64,000 bases of DNA, from NCBI GenBank assembly GCA_965113315.1, contig OZ220369.1. One strand, 5' to 3'. This stretch comes from Podarcis vaucheri (lineage: Eukaryota). Below are positions 6,873-63,529 of this stretch, piece by piece. A program made the position numbers and the translations under genes. Position 1 is the stretch's first letter. The number at the start of each line of letters is the position of its first letter. The notes under the pieces were generated by a model, which was not told the origin of the DNA, searched no databases, and saw nothing but the letters and a program-made list of their open reading frames with translations.

Positions 6873-7004
6873 TAATTAGCTGAAGCTTTGGTTGCTTAAT
6901 CCACATGCTGATAGCCCCGGGCTCCTTTGGAAGGGAGGCATAGACACTTAAAAAACTAATTGATTAAAAATGCAAAAGAAAAAGAGCCTTGGTTTCCCCT
7001 CTAG

Positions 7005-7092
7005 CCCTCCAGGTCCTCTGGATCCTAAGAATGGCATGGAGGACCCTGTGGTGAAGGAGATTGCCAAGAAGCATGGGAAATCCCCAGCTCAG
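7005..7092 (+). CDS. AKR1-family exon 7 (PPGPLDPKNGMEDPVVKEIAKKHGKSPAQ)
   Basis: ctag acceptor gives the required phase 2; gtaaa donor. Confidence 0.88.
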
Positions 7093-8065
7093 GTAAAGTG
7101 TTCCAGGTGTGCAGGTGTGTGTGGAGGTGTGTGCAAATGGTACCTGTTCAAACAGAAAAGTCTCCTTTTTTGCAAGTTGACTGCTTGTGTCAGGAGTTAC
7201 GACCCAAGATCAGAGGTGGGTGGGGGGAATACAGAGAGCAAGGCAATGGTACCAGTTTCGAAAGTGTTGTATTAATTTTGCTTGTCAAATAATTCCCAAT
7301 CATGCAACAGAGCCACTCAAGCGCTGCAAAGATTGTCTCTCAAACTAGCCAGCCAGCCTAGTATCACAGAGGGATGGCTGGAGGAGGGCATTGGAGGGCA
7401 GCTCGCTGGGGTGCCCAGAGCCCTTTCCCTCAAAATGTCTGTGTCTCTAAAGTACTTACCATTTTCCTGCCGTTAGTTGTTCAGTCCAAGTCTCTTTGTT
7501 GACGAAGGCCAAAGTTGCATGGCAGGCAAGCTGACATTGCATATTCAGGATGCTGTTGCCCTTTGTGGAAGACCACTGCCCTGACTAGGCAATTTCAACC
7601 AGTCCTTGCCTTGACAAGCTGTAACTTCCAAGGAAAGGAGATCGCCTCTTGGTTTCCCAAGTCAAAGCCCTGCTTATCTGAGATGGTTCAAATTGCTGAA
7701 AGCTATTGTCGGCTGAGTTAACATCCAGTCAGACAGTTTCTCCTTCATTCAGCATGTGGCTGATTATATTTAAAAGAGTCGTATGATAGAGATAATGGAA
7801 GCAAAAGTGTCCTGAATACATGAGTCCACAAGGTTTATTGAACAATATAGCTGGTTTTTTATCATGGTTCTTATTGCATGTGCAGTTTTTCTTGAGCTAC
7901 TTCTAGGGCTTCATGTGAGTTAGAAACAACAATAAAAAATCCAGTAAAACATTTTAAAAAACATAACAAAACACCATAATGTTTTAGAATGCCTCTTCCT
8001 GAATGGCCTCCTAATAAACAGCTTCAGGACGTTGGTCAGGCTCTGACTTGGGTGGATCTCTAGAA

Positions 8066-8747
8066 CAGTGTTTCCCAACCAGTGTTCCGCGGCACACTAG
8101 TGTGCCGTGAGAGGTTGGCTGGTGTGCCGTGGGAGGGAGGCGGGCGAGTCGGGTGGTGAGAGGCGGCGGCGGCGAGGATCCGCATTGAGCCGGGGGCGGC
8201 TCCGCGGTGGTGGTGCCGAGGTTTCTCTCTCCATTCTCCCCTCACACACACACACAGGAAATAACACAGGATCAGCTGACAGGACCCAGCCAATGGGGCG
8301 GCGGTGGGGCAGTGCGTGCAAAAGGGAGGAGCGTGAGACAGCGGACGAGGAGGAGGCCGGCATGTCCGGGCAGCAGCAGCAACAACAGCAGCAGCAACTC
8401 CCGGTGACGGCTCCTCAAGCCCCGGGCAACCCTACTCCCTCACCGGCCTCGGCCGCCCTCCTGCTCCACCCGCCGCCGCCTCCCCCGCCGCCACCACCAC
8501 AACAGCCGCCGCCGCCTCAGCTGCCGCCGTCCCTCAGTCCCTCGCTCTGCTGCCTCCTCCCCCCCACCCCCAAAGCTTGGAGGTTCCCCGGCAAGGGGGA
8601 GGGAAAAAAATTGAAAACTTTCACTTTTGTGCGTCCCTCCCGGCGTGACGTTGCGCGCTGACGTCACGGGGCTGTAATGGTGGTGTGCCGCGAGATTTTT
8701 TTCATCAAACAAGTGTGCCTTTGCCCAAAAAAGGTTGGGAAACACTG
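8066..8747 (+). mobile_element. Non-autonomous hAT element carrying captured CpG-rich host sequence (RANBP9-like 5' end)
   Basis: Perfect 15-bp TIRs cagtgtttcccaacc/ggttgggaaacactg; perfect 8-bp TSD ctctagaa (8058-8065, 8748-8755). Confidence 0.93.
8362..8530 (+). pseudogene. RANBP9: Transposon-captured gene fragment resembling the RANBP9 N-terminus (MSGQQQQQQQQQL...[16 protein letters not shown])
   Basis: Matches the recalled human RANBP9 start MSGQ...QQQQQQQQL...AAAAALLLHPPPPPPP; mixed synonymous codons in polyQ and polyP, all in one frame; no SPRY domain follows. Confidence 0.7.
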
Positions 8748-9429
8748 CTCTAGAAGGCCCCTTCCTAAACCACCTCTCTTTGTGCCTTTGCTCTCTGAAG
8801 TCAGTGCAGGGGCAAAGAACGACCTTTGTTGTTGGTCTAACTCTAAGGATTGGGGAGGGACCATAGACTCAGAGATATAGCTGCAAATAAAACATTTTAA
8901 GTGTGCTTTAAGTGAAATATACAGTGTGACACTGGATGGCGATGACGAGCCTTAGGGGAAATTCAATGTATTTTTAAAAGCACTTTAAAAAAAAAAAAAG
9001 CATTTTCAGACCATTTTTTGTATGTGTGTAGATTTCACACATGAAGAAGCTCCCATGTTCAGTCGCTGACACTTCAGTTAAAAGATCGGATAGCAAAACT
9101 GGGAAAGACCTTGGAGAACTCTGTGGGCAAAGCATAAGATATTGGGCTGCATCATCTCACCTGATCTTGTATATAAAACAGCTCCGAATATTCACAAGGA
9201 TGCACCAGGGCACAGAAGCTGTAGCACTAAGATAGGAAGGGGATGGTAGATTCTTACATGGAAGCTTAATTGACTGGCACTGCAGAACTGCTACCTGCAG
9301 TTTCTCGGGGACATGAGTAAGAATCTCTCCCAGGTGACCAGGTGGGGGAAGCTTTTTCTACAACTGACAAAGGAAGAGCAGCAAAGCTGCCTTTCACAGA
9401 GTCAGACCACTGCTCCATCTAGCTTGGTA

Positions 9430-9627
9430 CAGTGGTACCTCAGGTTACAGACGCTTCAGGTTACAGACTCCGCTAGCCCAGAAATAGTACCTCAGGTTAA
9501 GTACTTTGCGTCAGAATGAGAACAGAAATCGTGCGATGGCAGCAGGAGGCCCCATTAGCTAAAGTGGTACCTCAGGTTAAGAACAGACCTCCAGAACAAA
9601 TTAAGTTCTCAACCTGAGGTACCACTG
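9430..9627. mobile_element. Tc1/mariner-superfamily MITE (Tigger-like)
   Basis: TIRs cagtggtacctcaggtt/aacctgaggtaccactg, TA TSD. Confidence 0.85.
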
Positions 9628-9981
9628 TACTGGCAACACTGGCCAGCAGTATCCAGGCAGAGGTATCTCTCAGCCGCACCTAGAGAGGCCAGGGATTGTA
9701 CCTGCAGAGACAGCGACTGCTTCTATTCATGCATCACTAACAATATCCAGAGACGTATGCTGGCAGGCTATATTATTATTACCGATAATATTTATTTCTA
9801 ACCACCTCCCTTTTCTGTTTAAAAACACACACATGAAGTGCTTACAGCAAAGGCACAGTAAAAATATTTGCAAGGCCTTTGTGGTGGCTGCAGTGTTGAC
9901 AGTGGAGGGGGCACTAGCCGCCCCCTGGGTGAGGGCAGCTGGTTCAAGGCAAACTGGGTTGGTGGTCCTGGCTCTTGAAAG

Positions 9982-10128
9982 CAGTGGCGTAGCGTGGGGG
10001 GTGCAGGGGGGGCCGGCCGCACTGGGCGCAACATCTGGGGGTTAGGGTTAGGGGGCGCAAATCCACGGGTTAGGGGGCGCAAATTACTTGCCTTGCCCCG
10101 GGTGCCTACAACCCACGCTACGCCACTG
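9982..10128 (+). mobile_element. 147-bp hAT MITE with internal TTAGGG units
   Basis: 17-bp perfect TIRs cagtggcgtagcgtggg/cccacgctacgccactg; perfect 8-bp TSD cttgaaag. Confidence 0.92.
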
Positions 10129-10246
10129 CTTGAAAGAGGCAGGTGTCCAAGTTTGTGATGATGAATGTTGCCAGTTCCCGGACACAGCAAGTACATGGAG
10201 AGCCCAAATGATGACCAGTCTCTCCTTATCGCCAATGTCTCCACAG

Positions 10247-10330
10247 ATTCTGATCCGCTTCAACATTCAGAGTGGCATTGCCACTATTCCAAAAAGCCAG
10301 ACTCCTGCTCACATCGTCGAGAATGCAAAG
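10247..10330 (+). CDS. AKR1-family exon 8 (ILIRFNIQSGIATIPKSQTPAHIVENAK)
   Basis: ccacag acceptor, gtaaa donor; IPKS cofactor motif. Confidence 0.95.
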
Positions 10331-11102
10331 GTAAAGTAGACGTCAAGCTCTTTCTGCTAACACCTTTATATGCTGCAAGATGCTGCAGACTGGAGGCTTA
10401 AAGGGCCGAAGTTTAGGATGAATAGTGTTGCTGTTAAGGGGCGAGTAAGCCCATAGATATCAAAGCTCTTCTTTTGAAAAAGTGTACTTGATTATTTAAA
10501 TATTTGTTCCTTTGGACTATTAAGCACTGAGATTTTAAATTCGCATGAAAATAAATATAAAAATGCAGCATTAAGCTAGATCTTGAAATGCCCATGATGA
10601 TATTCAACTCTCTTGTATTCCAAGCAGACAAACTGGAAATTAATGGGCAGGTCCATTAATTTCAGTGGAAATTACTTAGCTGGTTATCACCCCAAAAGAC
10701 CAGTATCACAGTTAAACAATATCAACTTAAAATGGCCAATTATTTTTTATTACAAAAGGGAGGGAGGGGTTCACCTTTGTAACCTCACCCAATTGGAAGG
10801 CCAAATACTGAGTTTTCAATGAGTTTTGGAGCATGGGTAGTGAAACTCTCTTATAACCCCACATAATTTGCCTCCCTCTGACACTGGTGTCAAAAGGTAG
10901 TTGGGGTGCATGAGAAAGATGTTTTTTAAAAATCCGTTAATATCTTTGCTACCAACTTGAAAGTAAGGGGGTTTAAAGTTTCTGTCTTGGGTATCAGGCC
11001 TCAGGTCCTTTGGGTTTTTCTCCTTTTCAAAGACTGCACCTACTGGCACAGTGCCAAGCCAAGTAACTCCAAGCAAAAGTCATTGCTTCTCTTCTTTTAT
11101 AG

Positions 11103-16063: not shown

Positions 16064-17080
16064 AGAACCTAAGAAAAGCCTCGCTGGAACAGGCCAGTGG
16101 CCCATCTAGTCCAACATTCTGTTCTCACAGTGGCCAACCAGATGCCTGTGGAACCCTGCAAGCAGGATTTGAGCACAAAAACTCCCCTCCTGTAGTTTCC
16201 AGCAATTGGTACAGTGGTACCCCGCAAGACGAATGCCTCGCAAGACGGAAAACCCGCAAGACGAAAGGGTTTTCTGTTTTGGAGGCGCTTCGCAAGACGA
16301 ATTTCCCTATGGGCTTGCTTCGCAAGAAGAAAGCCCATAGGGAAATCTCCGGGGACCTGTTTTAAATTGCTGGCGGTCGGGAGCAAAGACTTTCGCCCAC
16401 AGCTGGCCTTCAGAAGAGGTCCTGGACCTCTTCTGAAGGCCGGCGGGGGGCAAAAGTCTTTGCTCCCCCCGCCTGCCTTCCCGGGACAGTGGAGACTTCT
16501 CCGCTGCCCCGGGCGATCTTAAAATGCTGGCGGGCGGGAGCGAAGCGTTCGCTGCCGCCCGCCAGCATTTTAAAATCGCCCCGGGACAGCGGAGGCTTCG
16601 CTCCCGCCCGCCAGCATTTTAAAATCGCCCCGGGACAGCAGGGGCTTTTAAAATGCTGGCGGTCGGCAGCAAAGCCCTCCTGTCCCCGGAGCTTGCGGGG
16701 CGGGAGGTGGGAAGAAGGGCTTTTCTTCCCACCGCCAGCCTCCAGAACAGCCTTCTGAAGGCTGGCAGTGGGAAGAAAAGCCCTTGTTCCCCCCCCCAGC
16801 CTTCGGAAGAGGTCGGGGGACAGACTGTCCCCGGACCTGGTCTGAAGGCGGTTTCCCTAGGAACGCATTGATTGATTTTCAATGCATTCCTATGGGAAAC
16901 CGTGCTTCGCAAGACGAAAAACTCGCAAGAAGAAAAAACTTGCAGAACGAATTAATTTCGTCTTGCGAGGCACCACTGTATTCGGCTGCATTGCTGCCTC
17001 CGACTGTGGAGGCAGAGTCGAGCCATCAGGGCTAGCAGCCACCAGGAGTCCTCCCCTCCATGAATTTCTCTAACCCTCTT
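16064..17080 (-). mobile_element. CR1-type 3' fragment split by the MITE at 16212-16978
   Basis: gctgga..caggccagtggcccatctagtcc motif continues after 16980; related copies near 25500, 32060-32365, 53435-53740 and 57590-57900. Confidence 0.6.
16212..16978 (+). mobile_element. Tc1/mariner-superfamily non-autonomous element (767 bp) with fold-back GC-rich interior
   Basis: TIRs cagtggtaccccgcaagacgaa/ttcgtcttgcgaggcaccactg, TA TSD, subterminal cgcaagacg repeats. Confidence 0.88.
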
Positions 17081-17832: not shown

Positions 17833-18610
17833 CATAGAATTTTAGAGGTGGAAGGAGACCTAAAGCAGGCTTCCTCAACCTCGGCCCTCCAGATGTTTTG
17901 AGACTACAGTTCCCATCATCCCTGACCGCTGGTCCTGCTAGCTAGGGATCATGGGAGTTGTAGGCCAAAAAACATCTGGAGGGCTGAGGTTGAGGAAGCC
18001 TGACCTAAAGGGTCATCTAGTCTAAGCCCCTGCAAGGCAGGAATCGCAGCTAAAGAATCCCTGACAGGTGGCCATCTGACCTCTGCTTAGAAACCTCCTG
18101 TGAAAGAGAGTCTATCAGCTTCCTAGTGAGTCAGTCTCACTGTCTTACAACTAGAAAGTTCTTCCTAATGTTTAGTCAGAATCTTGTTATTTGAATCCAC
18201 TAGTTCTGGTCCTCTCCTCTGTAAAAAGGAGAGGAGCACAGCAAAAAACAACAACCACTTGGCGCCACCTTCCATGGGACAGCTCTCCACATATTTGAAG
18301 ATGGCTCTCATATCACCCCTCAGCCTTGCCTTCTCCAGGCTAAACATCCCCAGCTCCCTCAACCGTTCCTCACAAGGCCTGGTTTCCAGACCCCTGACCC
18401 TCTTGGTCACCTTCCTCTGCACACCTTCCAGCCGGTCAATATCCTTCTTAAATTGCGGTGCCCAGAACTGGACACAGGACCCCAGGTGGGGTCTGACCAA
18501 GGCAGAATAAAACAGTGCTATCGCTTCTCTTGATCTACTTCTGCTGCAGCAGCCTAGAACAGTATTAGCTTCTGTTGCTGCTGCATCACACTGCTGACTC
18601 ATGTTAAGCT
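17833..18610 (-). mobile_element. CR1 LINE 3' fragment (ORF2 C-terminus)
   Basis: ORF 18165-18602 encodes [18 protein letters not shown]...LEGVQR...[15 protein letters not shown], typical of CR1. Confidence 0.9.
17866..18002. mobile_element. 137-bp palindromic hAT MITE inserted in CR1
   Basis: TIR caggcttcctcaacct; perfect 8-bp TSD acctaaag. Confidence 0.92.
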
Positions 18611-21929: not shown

Positions 21930-22752
21930 CGCTGGAATCATAGCTGAGGAAATCTGCAAACTCCTGGGCCAAGAGATCATCGCTGGCAAAGGCACAGAGG
22001 CAGGCAAAGAAGTGATTGCATTTCTGGCTTGCCTCTTCCTTAGCAGAAGCTGCCTTGCTGGACTTCAGCGACTGGCAGGAGCAGAGGAAGCGGTGCTCCG
22101 CCCTGCTCTTGTGGCCAGCCTTGTGGGAGAAGGAGATGTGGAGGTAACCCAAGCTATGCTTCTGGCTGGCTTTGCACTTCACCACTAGGATGTTCTTGGT
22201 AATCCTCTGAACTAGGGGCCCTGTGGACTCCGTGGCCAACTGCCATAAGGTTTGCTTCGTCTCAGCAGAGGCCTGCAACGAGTTCAAGACTGAGCTTTTC
22301 AGGGGCAACGGGGTGGCCTCTGCCTGGCAGTTCACAGCCAGTTTAATGTGCTGGCACTGGTTTTCCACCACCCCTTGTGCAGCCGCCTTCAAACACGATG
22401 GGACGTAGCAGCGCCCAGAGCTGAGCTGTGTGATGATGGTCCCATCTACTGTCTGGATGGTGGTCTCCGAAACTCCCAGCTCCACAAAGCACCGGTACTC
22501 TGGCCCCCTGTCCCTCTGCCGCACTGAATAGACCTGTAGATCAGAGCCAGTGTTGATTTTGACCGCGTCGACACCGGCCTGCTTCCGGGTGCCGTAGCGG
22601 AAGATGGTGCCGCAAGTCTTGTTCTTGCAGCTCAGCCCACGGGTGCCGTTGTAGGTGCCGCACCGGGGGCATTTCCTGATGCCTCTCAGGGTAGCTTTCC
22701 CCAAGTCTGATAAGAAAGCTGGGACTTTACTCCTGGCAGGGTTTGATTCCAT
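21930..22752 (-). CDS. C2orf42: C2orf42 coding exon 1 ([39 protein letters not shown]...YDSS)
   Basis: ORF 21922-22752; acceptor 12 nt upstream of the ATG (exon starts 22764); phase-1 donor after 21930. Confidence 0.96.
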
Positions 22753-23966: not shown

Positions 23967-25939
23967 CTGTGATGTTCCAGTGAGGTCATAAAGGGGGAAA
24001 GATGCATGCGAAATGTGCATCTTGCCACTAGCCCTTGCATTCTCAGATTGAGTGAGAGGAATCCTAGGAAGTCACAAATATTGGGACTCACTGCTGCTGC
24101 TGCTGGAAGGCAAATATTGATTTGGGGACTGCTCTCTCTCTCTCCCGATCTCTGTCAATAGTGAAGGAGGAAAGGACTGATCAGATTCTGCCTAGGTCAA
24201 GGTCCAGTGGACAGGCAGGCAGGCCCTTTTCCCACTTAGAAGCATCACCCCCCACACCCCAGGTGCACTGTCGCTTCCAGCCTACTTTTGGCTCTAAGGG
24301 ATGCCTTGCATTTCAGATTATTCACGACACATCTCAAACTATAAACAAATGCAGAATTATGAAAATAAACAAAACTCTTCAATAATTAATACAAAAGGGT
24401 GAATTCAAGGAGGAGGCAATCATTTAATTATTTTCTTTATATCTCACCTTTTTTTTCTAAGGAGCTCAAGGTGGCATATATGGTTTCCCCTCTCCTCATT
24501 AATCCCCACAACAACCCTGAGAGGCAGGTTAGACTGAGAGGCAAGGACTGGTCCTAGGTCATGCCAAGTGAGCTTCCTGAGAGAGTGGGAATCTCCAAGA
24601 TCCTAGTCAGTACAGAGGGCTGGATGGAAAGCCCCTAAATCTCGATCCCTAAGCCACACCAATCTTGAGCTACAGCACTGAAAAACTGCAAAATGCTCAC
24701 CCTACCTGATATGAGCCACTAGGAGGTCTTAGAATGTGGCTGTAGATTTGCTGTCTCAATCCCCTCAACCCCATTTAGGATTGCTCTGCCCTGCCCCAGT
24801 ATCTGCCAGGACTCATAAATATTCATTTTTTCCTCCCACCATTCCATGGTTCCAAGAAGTCCTCCTATTTCATGAACTATTCCACAGTCCATCAAGTTGT
24901 CTGTTCGCCTGCCAGCCAAGTGATCATTAAAATGAGAGAGTTCAGAGCTGGGAGAGTGGCAGTTTTTTTTTTAATCTTTTGCCCACTCTCCTCCAGGCAC
25001 CAGAGAGCAGCACACACAGTTCTCCTCTTACCTATTTTATTCTCAGAACAATCTTATGAGGTGGGCTACATTGAGAGAGAACAACTGGCCAAAGTCACCC
25101 AGGCTGATGTCCTAACCTGATCACCACCAGATGTTTTGGACTACAACTCCTAGCAGTGGAAGCTTAGCCATGTGATTCTGGGGCTAATGGAAGTTGCGGA
25201 ATGGTGCTCTAACCACTACCTAACAGTCTCCAATGTATTATTTGCACAGGTTCAAACCAATTCACATATTTTGTTGTGAAACTTGCAAAGGTTCCCAGCT
25301 CTTTAGCTAAGTCATCACATAGTGTTCCTTTGCAAGTAGTACTGCTGAAACAACACAACAAACCAGAAAGCAGTGATTCAGGCATTTTTAAGAACATAAG
25401 AGGAGTCTGCTGGAAGCCGCCCAGAGTGGCTGGGGCAACCCAGTCAGAATGGGCAGGGTACAAACAATAAAATCATCGTCATGGTTGTTATCATCATCAG
25501 GCCAATGGCCCATGCAGTTCAGCACCCTGCTCTCACAGTGGCCAGCCAGATGCTTGTGGGAATCTGCGGCGAGCAGGATCCGAGCCCAGGAGCAGCCCTC
25601 TTCCCTCCTGTGGTCTCCAGCAACGGGTACGCATTGTTGCCTTCCAGGGCGGCAGCAGCAGAGCAGAGCCAGCCTGGTGAATCGGGGCAGCGGCTTTCTG
25701 CCCTCTGGCCGCCGTGTGCAGCCCCCCAGCAGGCGGTGGCAGGGGCGAAGGACACTCACTTGGACAGAGACCGGGCAGGGAGGGAGGCGAGGAAGCATTC
25801 GTTCCCTTCACAAAGGGAAAGCGCTCCTCGCGCTCAGGGGCCCGTGGCCCGTGCGAGCTTCTTCAGGGAGGCAGGAGAAAGCACTCTGCCCATGTTCAGA
25901 GGCACCCTGCCTTCTCAGAAGCCAGACTGCGTTTGGAGA

Positions 25940-26640
25940 AGCAGAGAGAGGCGGCCCCACGGCGGGGCATCCCTCCTGCCCGCTTGGACGCGCAGCTCAG
26001 CCGGCCCGAGAAGCGGCCATCCTCCGACCCCGCGCTTGACACCTTCCGCATGGCGTCACCAGCAGCAGCTGCGCGACGTGCGGCGATGACGTCACGGGCC
26101 GGCAGCGGCCGCGCCCCCTCCTCGGTCGCATGGCAACCGCGGGCGGGAGAGGTGAGGCCTAGGCCAGAGAGTCTCCCTCCAGCCCGCCCAACGTCACTTC
26201 CTGCCGCTCCCTCCGCAGCGGGCGCGCAGCAGGACCCTTCCCCTTCCCGCCGAGGCCCCCGCCGCGTCGCCTTTTACCTGGGCTTTTTACCTCCTCAGCC
26301 TCGGGCCCCAGCCGGGCGGGCGGCCGGCGGAGGAAGTCGGCGAGCGGCCTCCGCCATGGCTCCTTACAAACGGTTCGCGGGTCCCGTCTGTAAGAGCGGC
26401 TCCCATTGGCGCAGCGGAGGCGCCGCTGGCTCGCGAAGCACGACGGGAAACGCAGTCCTGCTGCCTCCCAGGGTCGCGGAAGTCCCGCGCGGGGCTCCTC
26501 CTTATGTAAAAGGACCCGAGAGCTCGAGGGGAAAGGATGGGGGGAGGGGGATATGAGGCGGAGGCGTCAGGGCTGCGCTTTATTCCTTACAGGCGTAGCA
26601 CGAAACTGCACCTACCTGGCTTTTGGGGCAGCGCTGGCTT
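25940..26640 (-). promoter_or_regulatory. CpG-island promoter and first exon of C2orf42
   Basis: CpG-dense; CRE TGACGTCA at 26087-26094; ETS/CRE-like acgtcacttcctg at 26191-26203; ZNF143-like site at about 26439-26458; gtaaaa donors near 26290 and 26278. Confidence 0.75.
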
Positions 26641-26856
26641 TGCAACTAGGTCTCGCCTAGTTTACTTCATGTTCTTTCGTGTTAAGAATGCACTTGAAGC
26701 GCGGCTAGGATGCCCCCTTGCGATTCCCTCGCAGAGGTGAGCCCTTGCACGCCTTTAAAGGACGGCTCTCTCCGTTTTCTCCCTTTGAGGCTGGGTGACT
26801 AGCACCGAGGCAGGATGTCAAACAAGCTTGAGGAACCTACTTACTAAAGTGGCAAT

Positions 26857-45499: not shown

Positions 45500-45818
45500 T
45501 TAGATCCATGGAGGTCTGAGTCTCAAACAATGAAGACCTGTTTGCCCTGAAGGAAGGGAGAAGTGAGGAAGTCTAGGCCATACCACTAGCTCCTGACAGA
45601 AGTATCAAGGAGAATTGTTGGGGCAGCCCTCACCCATCTTCCCTGGAGCTACCTAAGAAAGACCTGTGTGAGCAACACATAGCCTGAAGGACTCTGTCAC
45701 ACTGAATTTTATTTGTTTTTGTATTTTAAACCACTTTGGATTCCTTGGCAGAAATGTAGTAAGTAAACTAACCATCATAGTCAGACTTCCTTAATAAAAG
45801 AAAAGTAACTGTACCTTC

Positions 45819-46183
45819 GGGACGCGGGTGGCGCTGTGGGCTAAAGCCTCAGCGCCTAGGGCTTGCCGATCGAAAGGTCGGCGGTTCGAATCCCCGCGGC
45901 GGGGTGCGCTCCCGCTGCTCGGTCCCAGCGCCTGCCCACCTAGCAGTTCGAAAGCACCCCCGGGGGCAAGTAGATAAATAGGTACCGCTTACCAGCGGGA
46001 AGGTAAACGGCGTTCCGTGTGCGGCTCTGGCTCGCCAGAGCAGCGTTGTCACGCTGGCCACGTGACCCGGAAGTGTCTTCGGACAGCGCTGGCCCCCGGC
46101 CTATAGATGTGAGATGGGCGCACAAACCCCAGAGTCTGTCAAGACTGGCCCGTTCGGGCAGGGGTACCTTTACCTTTACCTTT
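45819..46183 (+). mobile_element. Full-length Sauria SINE with TSD
   Basis: tRNA-derived head gggacgcgggtggcgctgtgg...ggttcgaatcc; (accttt)n tail; TSD aactgtaccttc at 45807-45818 and 46184-46195. Confidence 0.93.
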
Positions 46184-54049: not shown

Positions 54050-54860
54050 TCGCCCCGCTGCCTGAGAGGAGAAAAGGCCAAGGCCACCCCCCCCAAAAAA
54101 AAATAGTAATTCAAGAGGGGCGAATGCTTCCCCCTTCGCCTCCCCCCGCCCCGGCTTTTATGGGGAGCCGAGGGGTTTTATTCGCCCGCACAAAAGGAGA
54201 GAGAGAGGCAGCGGGGGAGGGGAAGGCGGGAGGGAGGGGGCGCAACGTGGCTCGACCCCTCCCCCTCACAATAGGCCTCCTCACAGCCTCCCTGCCGGCC
54301 CAACTCACAGCGTCTTGGGCATTTCGTCCTCCATGGCGGCGGCGGCGGTTCCTCTCCCTCCTCAGCCCTCCAGCCAGGCCTGGTCACAACCGCGCCCGGC
54401 TCGCCGCAGGCCAAATCCGCGCGCGAGTGCGGCGGGGGTGCGGGGCGGGAGGCCTCCGGGGAGCCCCGACGACGGCGCGGCGGACAACAAATCCGCCGCT
54501 GGCCTCTCAAGATGGCGCTGGTGGGCAAAGAGAGGGCCCGGGCCGGCCGACGGAAAGGACCGTCGGCGCATGCGCCGCAAGAAGGCAACCGCGGCGCCGC
54601 CGACAAACGCGCACGCGCGCTGGCGCCTCCTCGCCAACCGCGGCCGCTCTCTCGCGCCCGACGTAATCCTCCGCCGGCCTCTTTGCAGCTTCTTCTCCTT
54701 TCTCTTGCTTACTCTCGCGAGATTTCTAAGCCAGTCCGTGCGTGTTAAGTACGGTTTAAATCTTAGGAAAGCTTAACCCTCAGCCCCACGCGCGCAAATC
54801 CGGCTTCACGTCTCCTGTACAAATAAAAATAAATTCGACTCCGCACGCCCCCCCGCCAAA
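54050..54860 (-). promoter_or_regulatory. TIA1 CpG-island promoter
   Basis: YY1-type caagatggcg at 54508-54517; NRF1 gcgcatgcgc at 54566-54575; BANP/ZBTB33-type TCTCGCGAGA at 54713-54722. Confidence 0.85.
54309..54334 (-). CDS. TIA1: TIA1 exon 1 coding part (MEDEMPKTL)
   Basis: gccgccATGG Kozak context; gtgagt donor. Confidence 0.95.
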
Positions 54861-58256: not shown

Positions 58257-58709
58257 GTCTAGTTCAAGCTCTGGTTTTCCCAGTAGTGATGTATGGAAGT
58301 GAGAGCTGCACCATCAAGAAGGCTGATCGCCGAAGAATGGATGCTTTTGAATTCTGGTGCTGGAGGAGACTCTTGAGAGTCCCATGGACTGCAAGAAGAT
58401 CCAACCTATCCATTCTGAAGGAAATCAGCCCTGAGTGCTCACTGGAAGGACAGATCCTGAAGCTGAGGCTCCAAGACTTTGGCCACCTCAGGAGAAGAGA
58501 AGACTCCCTGGAAAAGACCCTGATGTTGGGAAAGATGGAGGGCACAAGGAGAAGGGGACGACAGAGGACGAGATGGTTGGATGGTGTTCTTGAAGCTCCC
58601 AGCATGAGTTTGACCAAACTGCGGGAGGCAGTGGAAGACAGGAGTGCCTGGCGTGCTCTGGTCCATGGGGTCACGAAGAGTCGGACACGACAAAACGACT
58701 CAACAACAA
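58257..58709 (+). mobile_element. BovB (RTE) LINE 3' fragment immediately upstream of PCYOX1
   Basis: MYGSESCTIKKADRRRMDAFEFWCWRRLLRVPWTARRSN...; (CAA)n tail; TSD caagacc at 58250-58256 and 58710-58716. Confidence 0.92.
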
Positions 58710-58739
58710 CAAGACCTCCAAATTCCTATCACACTTGGC

Positions 58740-59230
58740 GGCAGGGAGCCACCCCTTGCGGGCTTTCCTTCCGCGGGGCGGGCGGGAGGCTCCTGGCCGG
58801 CTCGCGTTGCCAGAGGAATCCTCCCGGCGCAGCAGCAGTCTACCCTTCTGGCCCGCGCCGCCTCCGGTTTCCGCCGCCGCCCAGAGGCCGCGGGGCGGGG
58901 CGCGGGCCCAGAAGAGTCCCTCCCTCCCCGCTTCCCTCCTTCCTTCTTTCCCGAGCAGCCGCCGCCATGGCCGCCCGCTGCCTGCTCCGCGCCCTGCCGC
59001 TCCTGGCCGCCCTGTGGCAGGGAGTCGCGCGGGGGAACCAGGAGCTGCGCCCCCCGCCCGCCAGGATAGGTAGGGAGTGGCGGAGGGGGGCTGGGGCCGG
59101 AGGAAAGGAAGGGTCGGGGGGGGGGAGGGACCCTCTGCCGCCTCGTTACTTTTCGGCCAGGGGCTTAAGGGCAAAGACGCCAACGCGCACATATTTGCAA
59201 TTGCACCTACGCGCGCACTCGTGCATTGAT
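58740..59230 (+). promoter_or_regulatory. PCYOX1 CpG-island promoter
   Basis: CpG-rich with GC boxes (ggggcggggc) upstream of a Kozak ATG. Confidence 0.75.
58967..59069 (+). CDS. PCYOX1: PCYOX1 (prenylcysteine oxidase 1) exon 1, signal peptide MAARCLLRALPLLAALWQGVARG...PPPARI
   Basis: gccgccATGG; hydrophobic leader; phase-1 gtagg donor. Confidence 0.88.
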
Positions 59231-60296
59231 GCAAAGGTGCCTTGGAGCATGTGCAGAGCGCTCAGCTTCCAGCGTGCTACACGCATAGAGGAAAGGCGCT
59301 CTGCATCTCACCTTTAGGATCTTAGTTGCAATAGTCTTTGTTTTTGAAGTTGGTGTTCCCCACACGGATTTTGACAAAGATGAGACACAACAGAGTCGTC
59401 CCTTCATTTCAAAGGGGGCTGGCTCCCTGGCCCCACATCCGTCCTTTGAGGTGGATCTGCTTTCAGGAACACCCAACTAAGTTTGGAAACTGAGTTTGAG
59501 ATCCTGAGATAGATCTTGCGGAGAACTTAAAGCGGATGCAAATTCTCTGCCCTGTGTCCCATTGTGATAGGAAAAGCTCTGTGGAGTGAATTTTCACATC
59601 CATGCAAATCTTTGGACATTCAGCAGACATCGCTTCAGCATCTCATTAATGCAGACTAAATACCACCTTTAAAATTCTAGTTTCCTTACTAGGAGACCAT
59701 GGGCAAAAAGGAGAGGCCTTTTTATTGGGCCATGGCAACCAGCAGAAAATAGGGAAGTGGGTTTTTCTCCGCCCCCCCTCCTCCTCCTGAGCCTGGCACC
59801 ATGTACTTGGGAGTTCACCCTTTGAGGAAATTCAATTCCCAATAACTGTGAGCTGCTACGTGTGCTTGTGCAGACATGCATTTCACATGAAACTTCAATT
59901 ACGATAGGTGTAAAGTTAAAAATCGTCTTGAAGCAAATAATGCTTCACCACACAAAGTTCCGCCAGCCCTATTGGGACATGACTTTCTGTGCGCCATCGA
60001 CTCATGGGCTTGTGAAACATGTGCTGACCCTGGTTGGAAACCCACATGTGGCTTTTTGAAACAAGCTAGTCCAGTTTTTCCTTTAGAAAATGCTTACACC
60101 AAACTGCTTACACCAGTTGGACAACTTATAATAATAATATAATAATAATTTATTATTTATACTCCGCCCATCTAGCTGGGTTTCCCCAGCCACTCTGGGC
60201 GGCTTCCAAAAGAATATTAAAATACTGTGATACATCAAGCATGTATATAGGAGGAAGAAATGCACTTGCAAATAAAAGATTCTAAATGCTATGTAC

Positions 60297-62743: not shown

Positions 62744-63229
62744 CAGCGCCGTCTTAAGCATATCCGGTGCCGTGGTGCAAAGATCCCTCCTGTGCCCCTC
62801 CCTTCCCAGAGTTGACCTTTTTTTAGGGCTGGAGGAGGCGGGCAGTGGCTGGAAGGTGGCTCCTCCGGCGGGGAAGAGGTGGAGGCTGGACGCAGCGCCT
62901 CCTGGCTCAGCTGGACGCTTCGTGCCGCGGTGGCCATGGCAGGCAGCACACCGAGCAAGCGGGTGTGCGCCAAGTGAGCAAGGGTGCATGCACTGCTCCC
63001 GCCAAGCGTCGGCTCGGTTTTTTCCCTTTTAGCCCTCTGGCGCCCCGCATAATTTGGTGCCTGCAGGCTAAAAGGGAAAAAGCAGAGCCAACGCTCGGCG
63101 GGAGTGGCGCACGCACCCTCGTTCACTCAGCACACTCATTTGGTGTTCCCCTGACTCTCGCCTAGCGCCATCCAGAACTTGGCGCTCTGGTGCCCCGCGC
63201 CACTAGCCTCAGTGGGTAAGACGGGCCTG
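62744..63229. mobile_element. 486-bp hAT-like element with GC-rich cargo and an internal inverted repeat
   Basis: Imperfect TIRs cagcgccgtctta/taagacgggcctg; 8-bp TSD tgtttgtg/cgtttgtg. Confidence 0.75.
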
Positions 63230-63529
63230 CGTTTGTGTGTGCGACAGGTCTGGGTATCGCTGCTTTTCTTCCTCTCAGAATGTAAGCTGTAAGCCAAAGT
63301 CACAAGAATAAGATGGGTACATCTCAGGTGTCAAAAGCCAAGGTAAAGTGGTGTGTCTTCCAAACTTGCCAGAAGCTTCTCTCCACCACAGAAAAGGCCC
63401 TTTCCTGGACTGCACCCCCTATGCCATTCTTAGCACCCAAGTGTGTCTGTAGGGAAGGAGGCAATCTTTCATGTACCTGGGGTTTTTTTGTGAGTAGTTT
63501 AGGGCTTTAAACACTCATGTGAGCAACTT

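Follow-up and report, generated by a model that had tools for sequence, protein, structure and literature searches.

A non-autonomous hAT transposon with RANBP9-like cargo in an AKR intron of Podarcis vaucheri, and the amplified lacertid Pack-hAT family to which it very probably belongs

How does DNA resembling the 5' end of RANBP9 come to lie between the ends of a transposon in an intron of an aldo-keto reductase (AKR) gene of the lizard Podarcis vaucheri, and did it arrive there by a capture event of its own or as one copy of a mobile family? RANBP9 (RanBPM) is a housekeeping gene whose product is a scaffold of the CTLH E3 ligase, and in plants, cut-and-paste transposons are well known to capture gene fragments. 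An earlier note on the window analyzed here (the whole 64-kb stretch of contig OZ220369.1) had described a 682-bp element with perfect 15-bp terminal inverted repeats (TIRs) and a perfect 8-bp target-site duplication (TSD), and all three are present, the element extending from 8066 to 8747. Its ends, the flanking duplication and the two arms are located as follows (window coordinates).

8058 to 8065, no strand: left target-site duplication CTCTAGAA, identical to the 8-mer at 8748-8755 and fitting the hAT target NTCTAGAN
8066 to 8080, plus strand: 5' terminal inverted repeat CAGTGTTTCCCAACC, the perfect reverse complement of 8733-8747
8081 to 8130, plus strand: 5' subterminal arm with GGCACAC/GTGTGCC motifs at 8091, 8100 and 8122, from a 7-mer count and an inverted-repeat comparison
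8676 to 8732, plus strand: 3' subterminal arm with GTGTGCC motifs at 8683 and 8713, from a 7-mer count and an inverted-repeat comparison
8733 to 8747, minus strand: 3' terminal inverted repeat, which reads GGTTGGGAAACACTG on the plus strand and translates as GWETL
8748 to 8755, no strand: right target-site duplication CTCTAGAA, identical to the left 8-mer

The AKR exons are on the plus strand, with an exon-7-like piece ending near 7090 and an exon with the IPKS motif near 10250-10330. The element lies between exon-7-like and exon-8-like pieces, which places it in AKR intron 7, as the earlier note had it, and in sense orientation. Elsewhere in the host locus, a trinucleotide repeat at 1352-1384 reads CCCCCCCC directly 3' of an AKR exon-2-like ORF, and an AT-rich microsatellite at about 1530-1584, in the intron following that ORF, reads poly-Ile.

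The ends have the properties of the hAT superfamily, namely an 8-bp duplication (CTCTAGAA on both sides) and short TIRs (about 10-25 bp, beginning with CAG or TAG), here the perfect 15-bp CAGTGTTTCCCAACC. An exhaustive scan of the window for perfect 8-bp TSDs adjoining 15-bp TIRs with at most two mismatches, with the ends spaced 80-8000 bp apart, returned four structures against a chance expectation of ~0.007 (our own rough estimate): the 682-bp element, a pair of short MITE-like elements, and a 90-bp candidate that is weaker, with two mismatches in its ends. Allowing up to two mismatches, the TIR of the 682-bp element is matched in the 64 kb at 8066-8080 and 8733-8747 only, and five of the ten occurrences of the 7-mer GTGTGCC/GGCACAC fall in its two arms, whose imperfect inverted repeat reaches ~40 bp at 76%. 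These repeats are presumed to be subterminal motifs to which a transposase would bind, a role that we infer. No second copy of the TIR, the arms or the cargo was found elsewhere in the 64-kb window. A Pfam search of the 99-aa and 184-aa ORFs gave no domain, indicating that the element lacks a transposase, in agreement with the earlier note, and an Rfam search of 7000-10500 found no family. Our results support the assignment of the 682-bp element as a non-autonomous hAT transposon.

The two MITE-like elements differ from it in size. One, of 147 bp (9982-10128), is GC-rich, has perfect 15-bp TIRs (CAGTGGCGTAGCGTG) and a perfect 8-bp TSD, CTTGAAAG, and lies ~120 bp upstream of the AKR exon encoding the IPKS motif. 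The other, of 137 bp (17866-18002), is hAT-like, with perfect 15-bp TIRs (CAGGCTTCCTCAACC) and the TSD ACCTAAAG; together with the other elements, it suggests that hATs have been recently active in the Podarcis vaucheri genome.

Between the arms of the 682-bp element lies the cargo, the interior that had been described as CpG-island-like and that indeed has a GC content of 0.68 and a CpG observed/expected ratio (o/e) of 0.75, versus a CpG o/e of 0.19-0.31 in the flanks. The following parts can be told apart.

8131 to 8260, plus strand: left GC-rich cargo piece (GC 0.69, CpG o/e 0.87), from RANBP9 upstream DNA or a second donor
8261 to 8361, plus strand: promoter- or 5'UTR-like stretch before the ATG, with a CCAAT box at 8290-8294 and a GC box at 8295-8301, read from the sequence
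8362 to 8499, plus strand: RANBP9-derived coding start, codons 1-46 (MSGQ, polyQ, LPVTAPQAPGNPTPSPASAALLLH, polyP), from alignments and shuffles
8488 to 8531, plus strand: RANBP9 exon 1 possibly continuing in a shifted frame (ATTTTAAAASAAAV versus AATTTTTAATTVSPV), from the second tblastn HSP
8532 to 8675, plus strand: right cargo piece, with a CRE (TGACGTCA) at 8659-8666 and a half-CRE at 8646-8650, found also in Podarcis siblings
8362 to 8661, plus strand: 99-codon ORF from the ATG at 8362 to a TGA at 8659-8661 inside the CRE, with no domain

The frame that opens with the ATG at 8362 and stays open to 8661 encodes the sequence quoted earlier, and mixed synonymous codons are seen, as had been remarked, in both its polyQ run (CAG and CAA) and its polyP run (CCG, CCT, CCC and CCA). 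The CCAAT box and the CRE had likewise been located correctly, and the GC box, GGGGCGG, directly follows the CCAAT box. Other CpG-island-like stretches (GC ≥ 0.6 and CpG o/e ≥ 0.65 in 200-bp windows) occur at 16351-16750, 22401-22700, 25851-26650, 45801-46150, 54051-54750, 58601-59250 and 62851-63250; none of them carries the TIR and TSD signature in the scan of the window.

The identity of the cargo was approached through its ORF. Queried with the 99-aa ORF, a word-indexed database of 5.8 billion proteins yielded two Logan ORFs, one of them, P0002, at an E value of 5e-4. P0002 is a lizard RANBP9 exon-1 product that matches human RANBP9 (in 7NSC) at an E value of 1e-41 in a search of the PDB, in an alignment spanning LNEQEKEL...NNLRVHYKG, and it scores better on RANBP9 than on RANBP10. 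Composition-adjusted BLASTP of the low-complexity region was not significant (E about 16), a result that we attribute to the low complexity itself, and unfiltered tblastn and a shuffle test were used for this reason. In the unfiltered tblastn, P0003, a longer sequence from the same 90% cluster as P0002, is identical to the window at 38 of 49 residues without gaps (8383-8529), while a second HSP (frame +2, 17/37 identity) is weak and of low complexity. When the window peptide was compared with 5000 composition-preserving shuffles, the real score stood at z = 14.5 and was reached by none of them; for a 24-residue core without the homopolymers, 20/24 residues are identical, z is 13.6, and again no shuffle reached the score. 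The homology to RANBP9 ends at about codon 46 in the ORF frame, with a weak continuation in a shifted frame to ~8531. These alignments support the proposal of the earlier note that the 5' end of RANBP9 is the source of the cargo.

Other searches with the ORFs of the element returned little. The 99-aa ORF had no match among PDB sequences, and in a representative search it retrieved P0001 and P0004 only, without RANBP9; P0004, a proline-rich protein of 720 aa, was taken as a compositional match, and a search with the 184-aa ORF added nothing further. P0001, a Logan ORF on a 1751 nt contig, is identical to the window ORF at 40 of its first 41 residues and retains the 'ATSAPPPP' of RANBP9 that the window copy has lost. 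Its RANBP9-like N-terminus spans 49 residues, after which come 113 residues without an assignable match; a reading of these as frame-shifted RANBP9 exon 1 was ruled out by our own back-translation, and their likeness to the left cargo piece is weak and distrusted. P0001 may be another deletion derivative. As to function, the 99-aa and 184-aa ORFs have no Pfam match for SPRY, LisH, CTLH or CRA, which argues against a functional paralogue of RANBP9.

The search with P0002, extended to cluster members, led to 15 distinct UniProt models from Podarcis muralis that contain RANBP9 exon-1 sequence (P0008, P0009, P0011, P0013, P0025, P0046 and P0124-P0132), the common block of which was aligned by script. 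Since these are protein models of public annotation, odd junctions in them can be either true deletions or modelled introns. The models join the cargo to the remainder of RANBP9 exon 1, the EKELKRRL...NNLRVHYKG block. Nine of the 15 start with ATTAAATPGDGSSSPG, which is the window cargo at 8379-8471 read in another frame, and the three that were aligned to it in that frame (P0013, P0125 and P0131) are identical at 31/31 residues; the eight-member cluster of P0013 continues ...QPYSLTGLGRPPAPP, and P0009 has the first 16 residues in common. Three further models of the 15 start with GGERRGGGGEDP, which resembles the left piece at 8132-8182 in a weak match; similarly, the translation of the left piece, ..RGGGGEDP.., weakly resembles the N-termini of P0025, P0132 and P0046, which run on into RANBP9 exon 1. 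The right piece is represented in P0131, where VPWQGGGEKIETYTF / FVRPSRCDAAR aligns to window 8583-8658 and the end of the model, ...VPWQGGGEKIETYTFVRPSRCDAAR, aligns up to the stop of the ORF. Since Podarcis siblings have both the left and the right piece as well, any chimerism would be older than the amplification; the right piece may come from RANBP9 intron 1 or from another donor.

The siblings also bear the mark of the transposon end. In P0009, P0125, P0127 and P0130, HYKG is followed by GWETL, and since the 3' TIR reads GGT TGG GAA ACA CTG, this is the translated TIR. Beyond it, the models enter three distinct flanks at the protein level, beginning with D, T and L (the last in both P0125 and P0130), and this points to insertions at different sites. 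Among nine native-like ORFs, which come from lizard-like Logan contigs, a mammal-like contig, tuatara and birds, eight have an unchanged 48-residue exon-1 block and one has a single change. Substitutions in this block are present in ten of the 15 Podarcis models, as expected of multiple decaying copies. P0124 is of the RANBP9 type, not the RANBP10 type, despite bearing the name RANBP10. A 'RGTEG' match between a sibling tail and the minus strand of the window was judged compatible with chance.

After HYKG, where exon 1 ends, spliced bird models continue with HGKTPKD, whereas the siblings do not continue into exon 2, indicating that the captured DNA was genomic and not cDNA. Capture at the DNA level is likewise seen in the presence of non-exon-2 sequence after HYKG, the lack of poly(A), and the bracketing of the cargo by TIRs. 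Judged from their translated sequences, the longer siblings appear to contain RANBP9 exon 1 in full, with further sequence past its donor. Two pairs of models, P0008/P0009 and P0129/P0130, each have a private substitution in common within the pair and differ in their 3' ends, one member reading through and the other passing from HYKG into the TIR. A pair of this kind could represent two isoforms of one locus, in which the captured donor is spliced to an AG before the TIR, or two sister copies, and the differing 3' ends are a hint, as a lead only, that longer copies are transcribed and spliced.

Taken together, the element in the window is very probably an internally deleted copy of an amplified, non-autonomous lacertid Pack-hAT family of the Pack-TIR type with RANBP9 cargo. 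In the earlier note it had been regarded as a young capture; a separate capture event is not supported, as sibling Podarcis models carry the same cargo together with the whole of exon 1. In the history that we propose, a hAT backbone with a CAGTG..CCAACC TIR and subterminal GTGTGCC repeats would have acquired, in an ancestor of lacertid lizards, a genomic segment from the CpG island at the 5' end of RANBP9, running from the 5' flank or 5'UTR through all of exon 1 to some point past the exon-1 donor. The capture route was likely template switching during gap repair or replication, as the literature on multicopy Pack-TIRs suggests (PMC8277862). The composite would then have been mobilized in trans by a hAT transposase and spread to many loci, shedding internal segments on the way. 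In the window copy, a deletion derivative of this kind, the conserved half of exon 1 and the splice donor would have been lost and the left and right pieces (the latter with the CRE), the promoter-like stretch and RANBP9 codons 1 to ~46-57 kept. It would have inserted by cut-and-paste at CTCTAGAA in AKR intron 7, where it lies in sense orientation. Its ends and its duplication are perfect and its CpGs undecayed, which points to a recent insertion, and the high CpG content probably reflects this youth. We assume that the copy is most likely a functionally inert passenger in the intron.

Three other accounts of the locus were weighed against membership in an amplified family. That a GC-rich, low-complexity ORF with polyQ and polyP merely looks like RANBP9 would fit the insignificant composition-adjusted BLASTP, the blank PDB search with the ORF and the representative search without RANBP9; it is hard to credit, however, when the non-repetitive core stands so far above its shuffles (20/24, z 13.6) and the sibling models physically link the cargo to the EKELKRRL...NNLRVHYKG block of RANBP9. 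Very unlikely, if a little less so, is an independent capture, in which transposition-independent gap repair brought RANBP9 DNA into a hAT MITE already resident in AKR intron 7. Tan et al. 2021 (PMC8277862) found most Pack-TIRs of animals to be single-copy and to have arisen by such repair, and the 64-kb window holds no other copy, but the same cargo (the 31/31 stretch and both the left and right pieces) recurs in many Podarcis models at different flanks, and a perfect TSD brackets the entire composite.

A host function is of another kind, being compatible with membership in the amplified family and not exclusive of it: an unmethylated CpG island with CCAAT box, GC box and CRE would serve as an internal promoter or enhancer of AKR or drive a short transcript. 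The promoter-like motifs, a CpG o/e far above that of the flanks and the sense orientation upstream of AKR exon 8 all accord with such a role, as do the transcription of a share of Pack-TIRs, often as chimeras (Tan et al., PMC8277862), and the Ensembl/UniProt gene models built on sibling copies. Against this, the window copy has neither the exon-1 splice donor nor a domain in its ORF, and youth explains the high CpG content equally well, so that we regard a host function as improbable. Beyond the amplified family with RANBP9 cargo, a wider generalization may be entertained tentatively, although we lean slightly against it: one hAT backbone would, on repeated occasions, have taken up the CpG-island promoter and first exon of different genes, with the RANBP9 version at tens to hundreds of copies and the longer copies transcribed and spliced into flanking DNA, as a vertebrate counterpart of the rice Pack-MULEs. 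If so, cassettes of promoter, first exon and splice donor would be scattered into introns.

By itself, the window copy is an ordinary truncated passenger, and the type of capture is already known in animals as Pack-TIRs. The family stands out for its copy number, for carrying a first exon that is coding, and for the spurious genes to which it gives rise in a public proteome: at least 15 short Podarcis muralis 'genes' (two named RANBP10, the others 'uncharacterized') appear to be transposon copies and not genes. Gene-fragment capture in animals has been thought to be mostly single-copy and transposition-independent (PMC8277862), and a RANBP9 first-exon cassette at many lacertid loci would rank among its largest animal examples. 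The family would also offer a natural system for studying how chimeric transcripts arise from captured promoters, first exons and splice donors. A literature search found no report of a transposon or hAT carrying RANBP9, nor of Pack-TIRs in squamates. A survey of 100 animal genomes recorded 370 Pack-TIRs, of which 208 are hAT and only four multicopy, three from frog and one from alligator, these favoring GC-rich cargo; for the sole lizard included, anoCar2, its table lists zero Pack-TIRs and hardly any scored TIR elements (Tan et al. 2021, PMC8277862).

Compared with RANBP9 itself, the window ORF owes its first 46 residues and the context of its start codon to that gene; unlike RANBP9, it lacks SPRY, LisH, CTLH and CRA and runs into unrelated sequence, and it is not a copy of the gene. 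For the backbone, a close likeness is found in Anolis, where the TIR of hAT-N3_AC, CAGTGGTTCCCAACCT, is one mismatch from that of the window element, and where hAT-N3_AC and hAT-HT3N_AC have the same CAGTG(G/T)TTCCCAACC-type TIR, the target NTCTAGAN and a length of 300-800 bp (Novick et al. 2010, PMC3014272). The likeness covers TIR, target and length, and the RANBP9 family belongs to another lizard lineage; 'extraneous DNA' was described in the Anolis non-autonomous elements, with no host-gene origin reported (PMC3014272). Like the rice Pack-MULEs, which are often chimeric and internally rearranged, the family consists of TIR elements with GC-rich 5' fragments of genes that have probably been amplified and rearranged internally, and that may be chimeric as well, whereas the Pack-MULEs belong to the Mutator superfamily, with a 9-bp TSD, long TIRs, plant hosts and thousands of elements. 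Close in kind is Pack-hAT-N8_XT of Xenopus tropicalis, which carries 291 bp of the CAPSL 5'UTR in three copies (PMC8277862). In both, the backbone is of the hAT type (TIRs and an 8-bp TSD), the cargo is a GC-rich 5' fragment of a host gene and a transposase is missing; several copies at different loci are reported for the frog and, from protein models, probable for the lizard. The RANBP9 family differs from Pack-hAT-N8_XT and its three copies in numbering at least 15 annotated models in one lacertid, and in that its longer copies appear to include a coding exon 1 with its donor.
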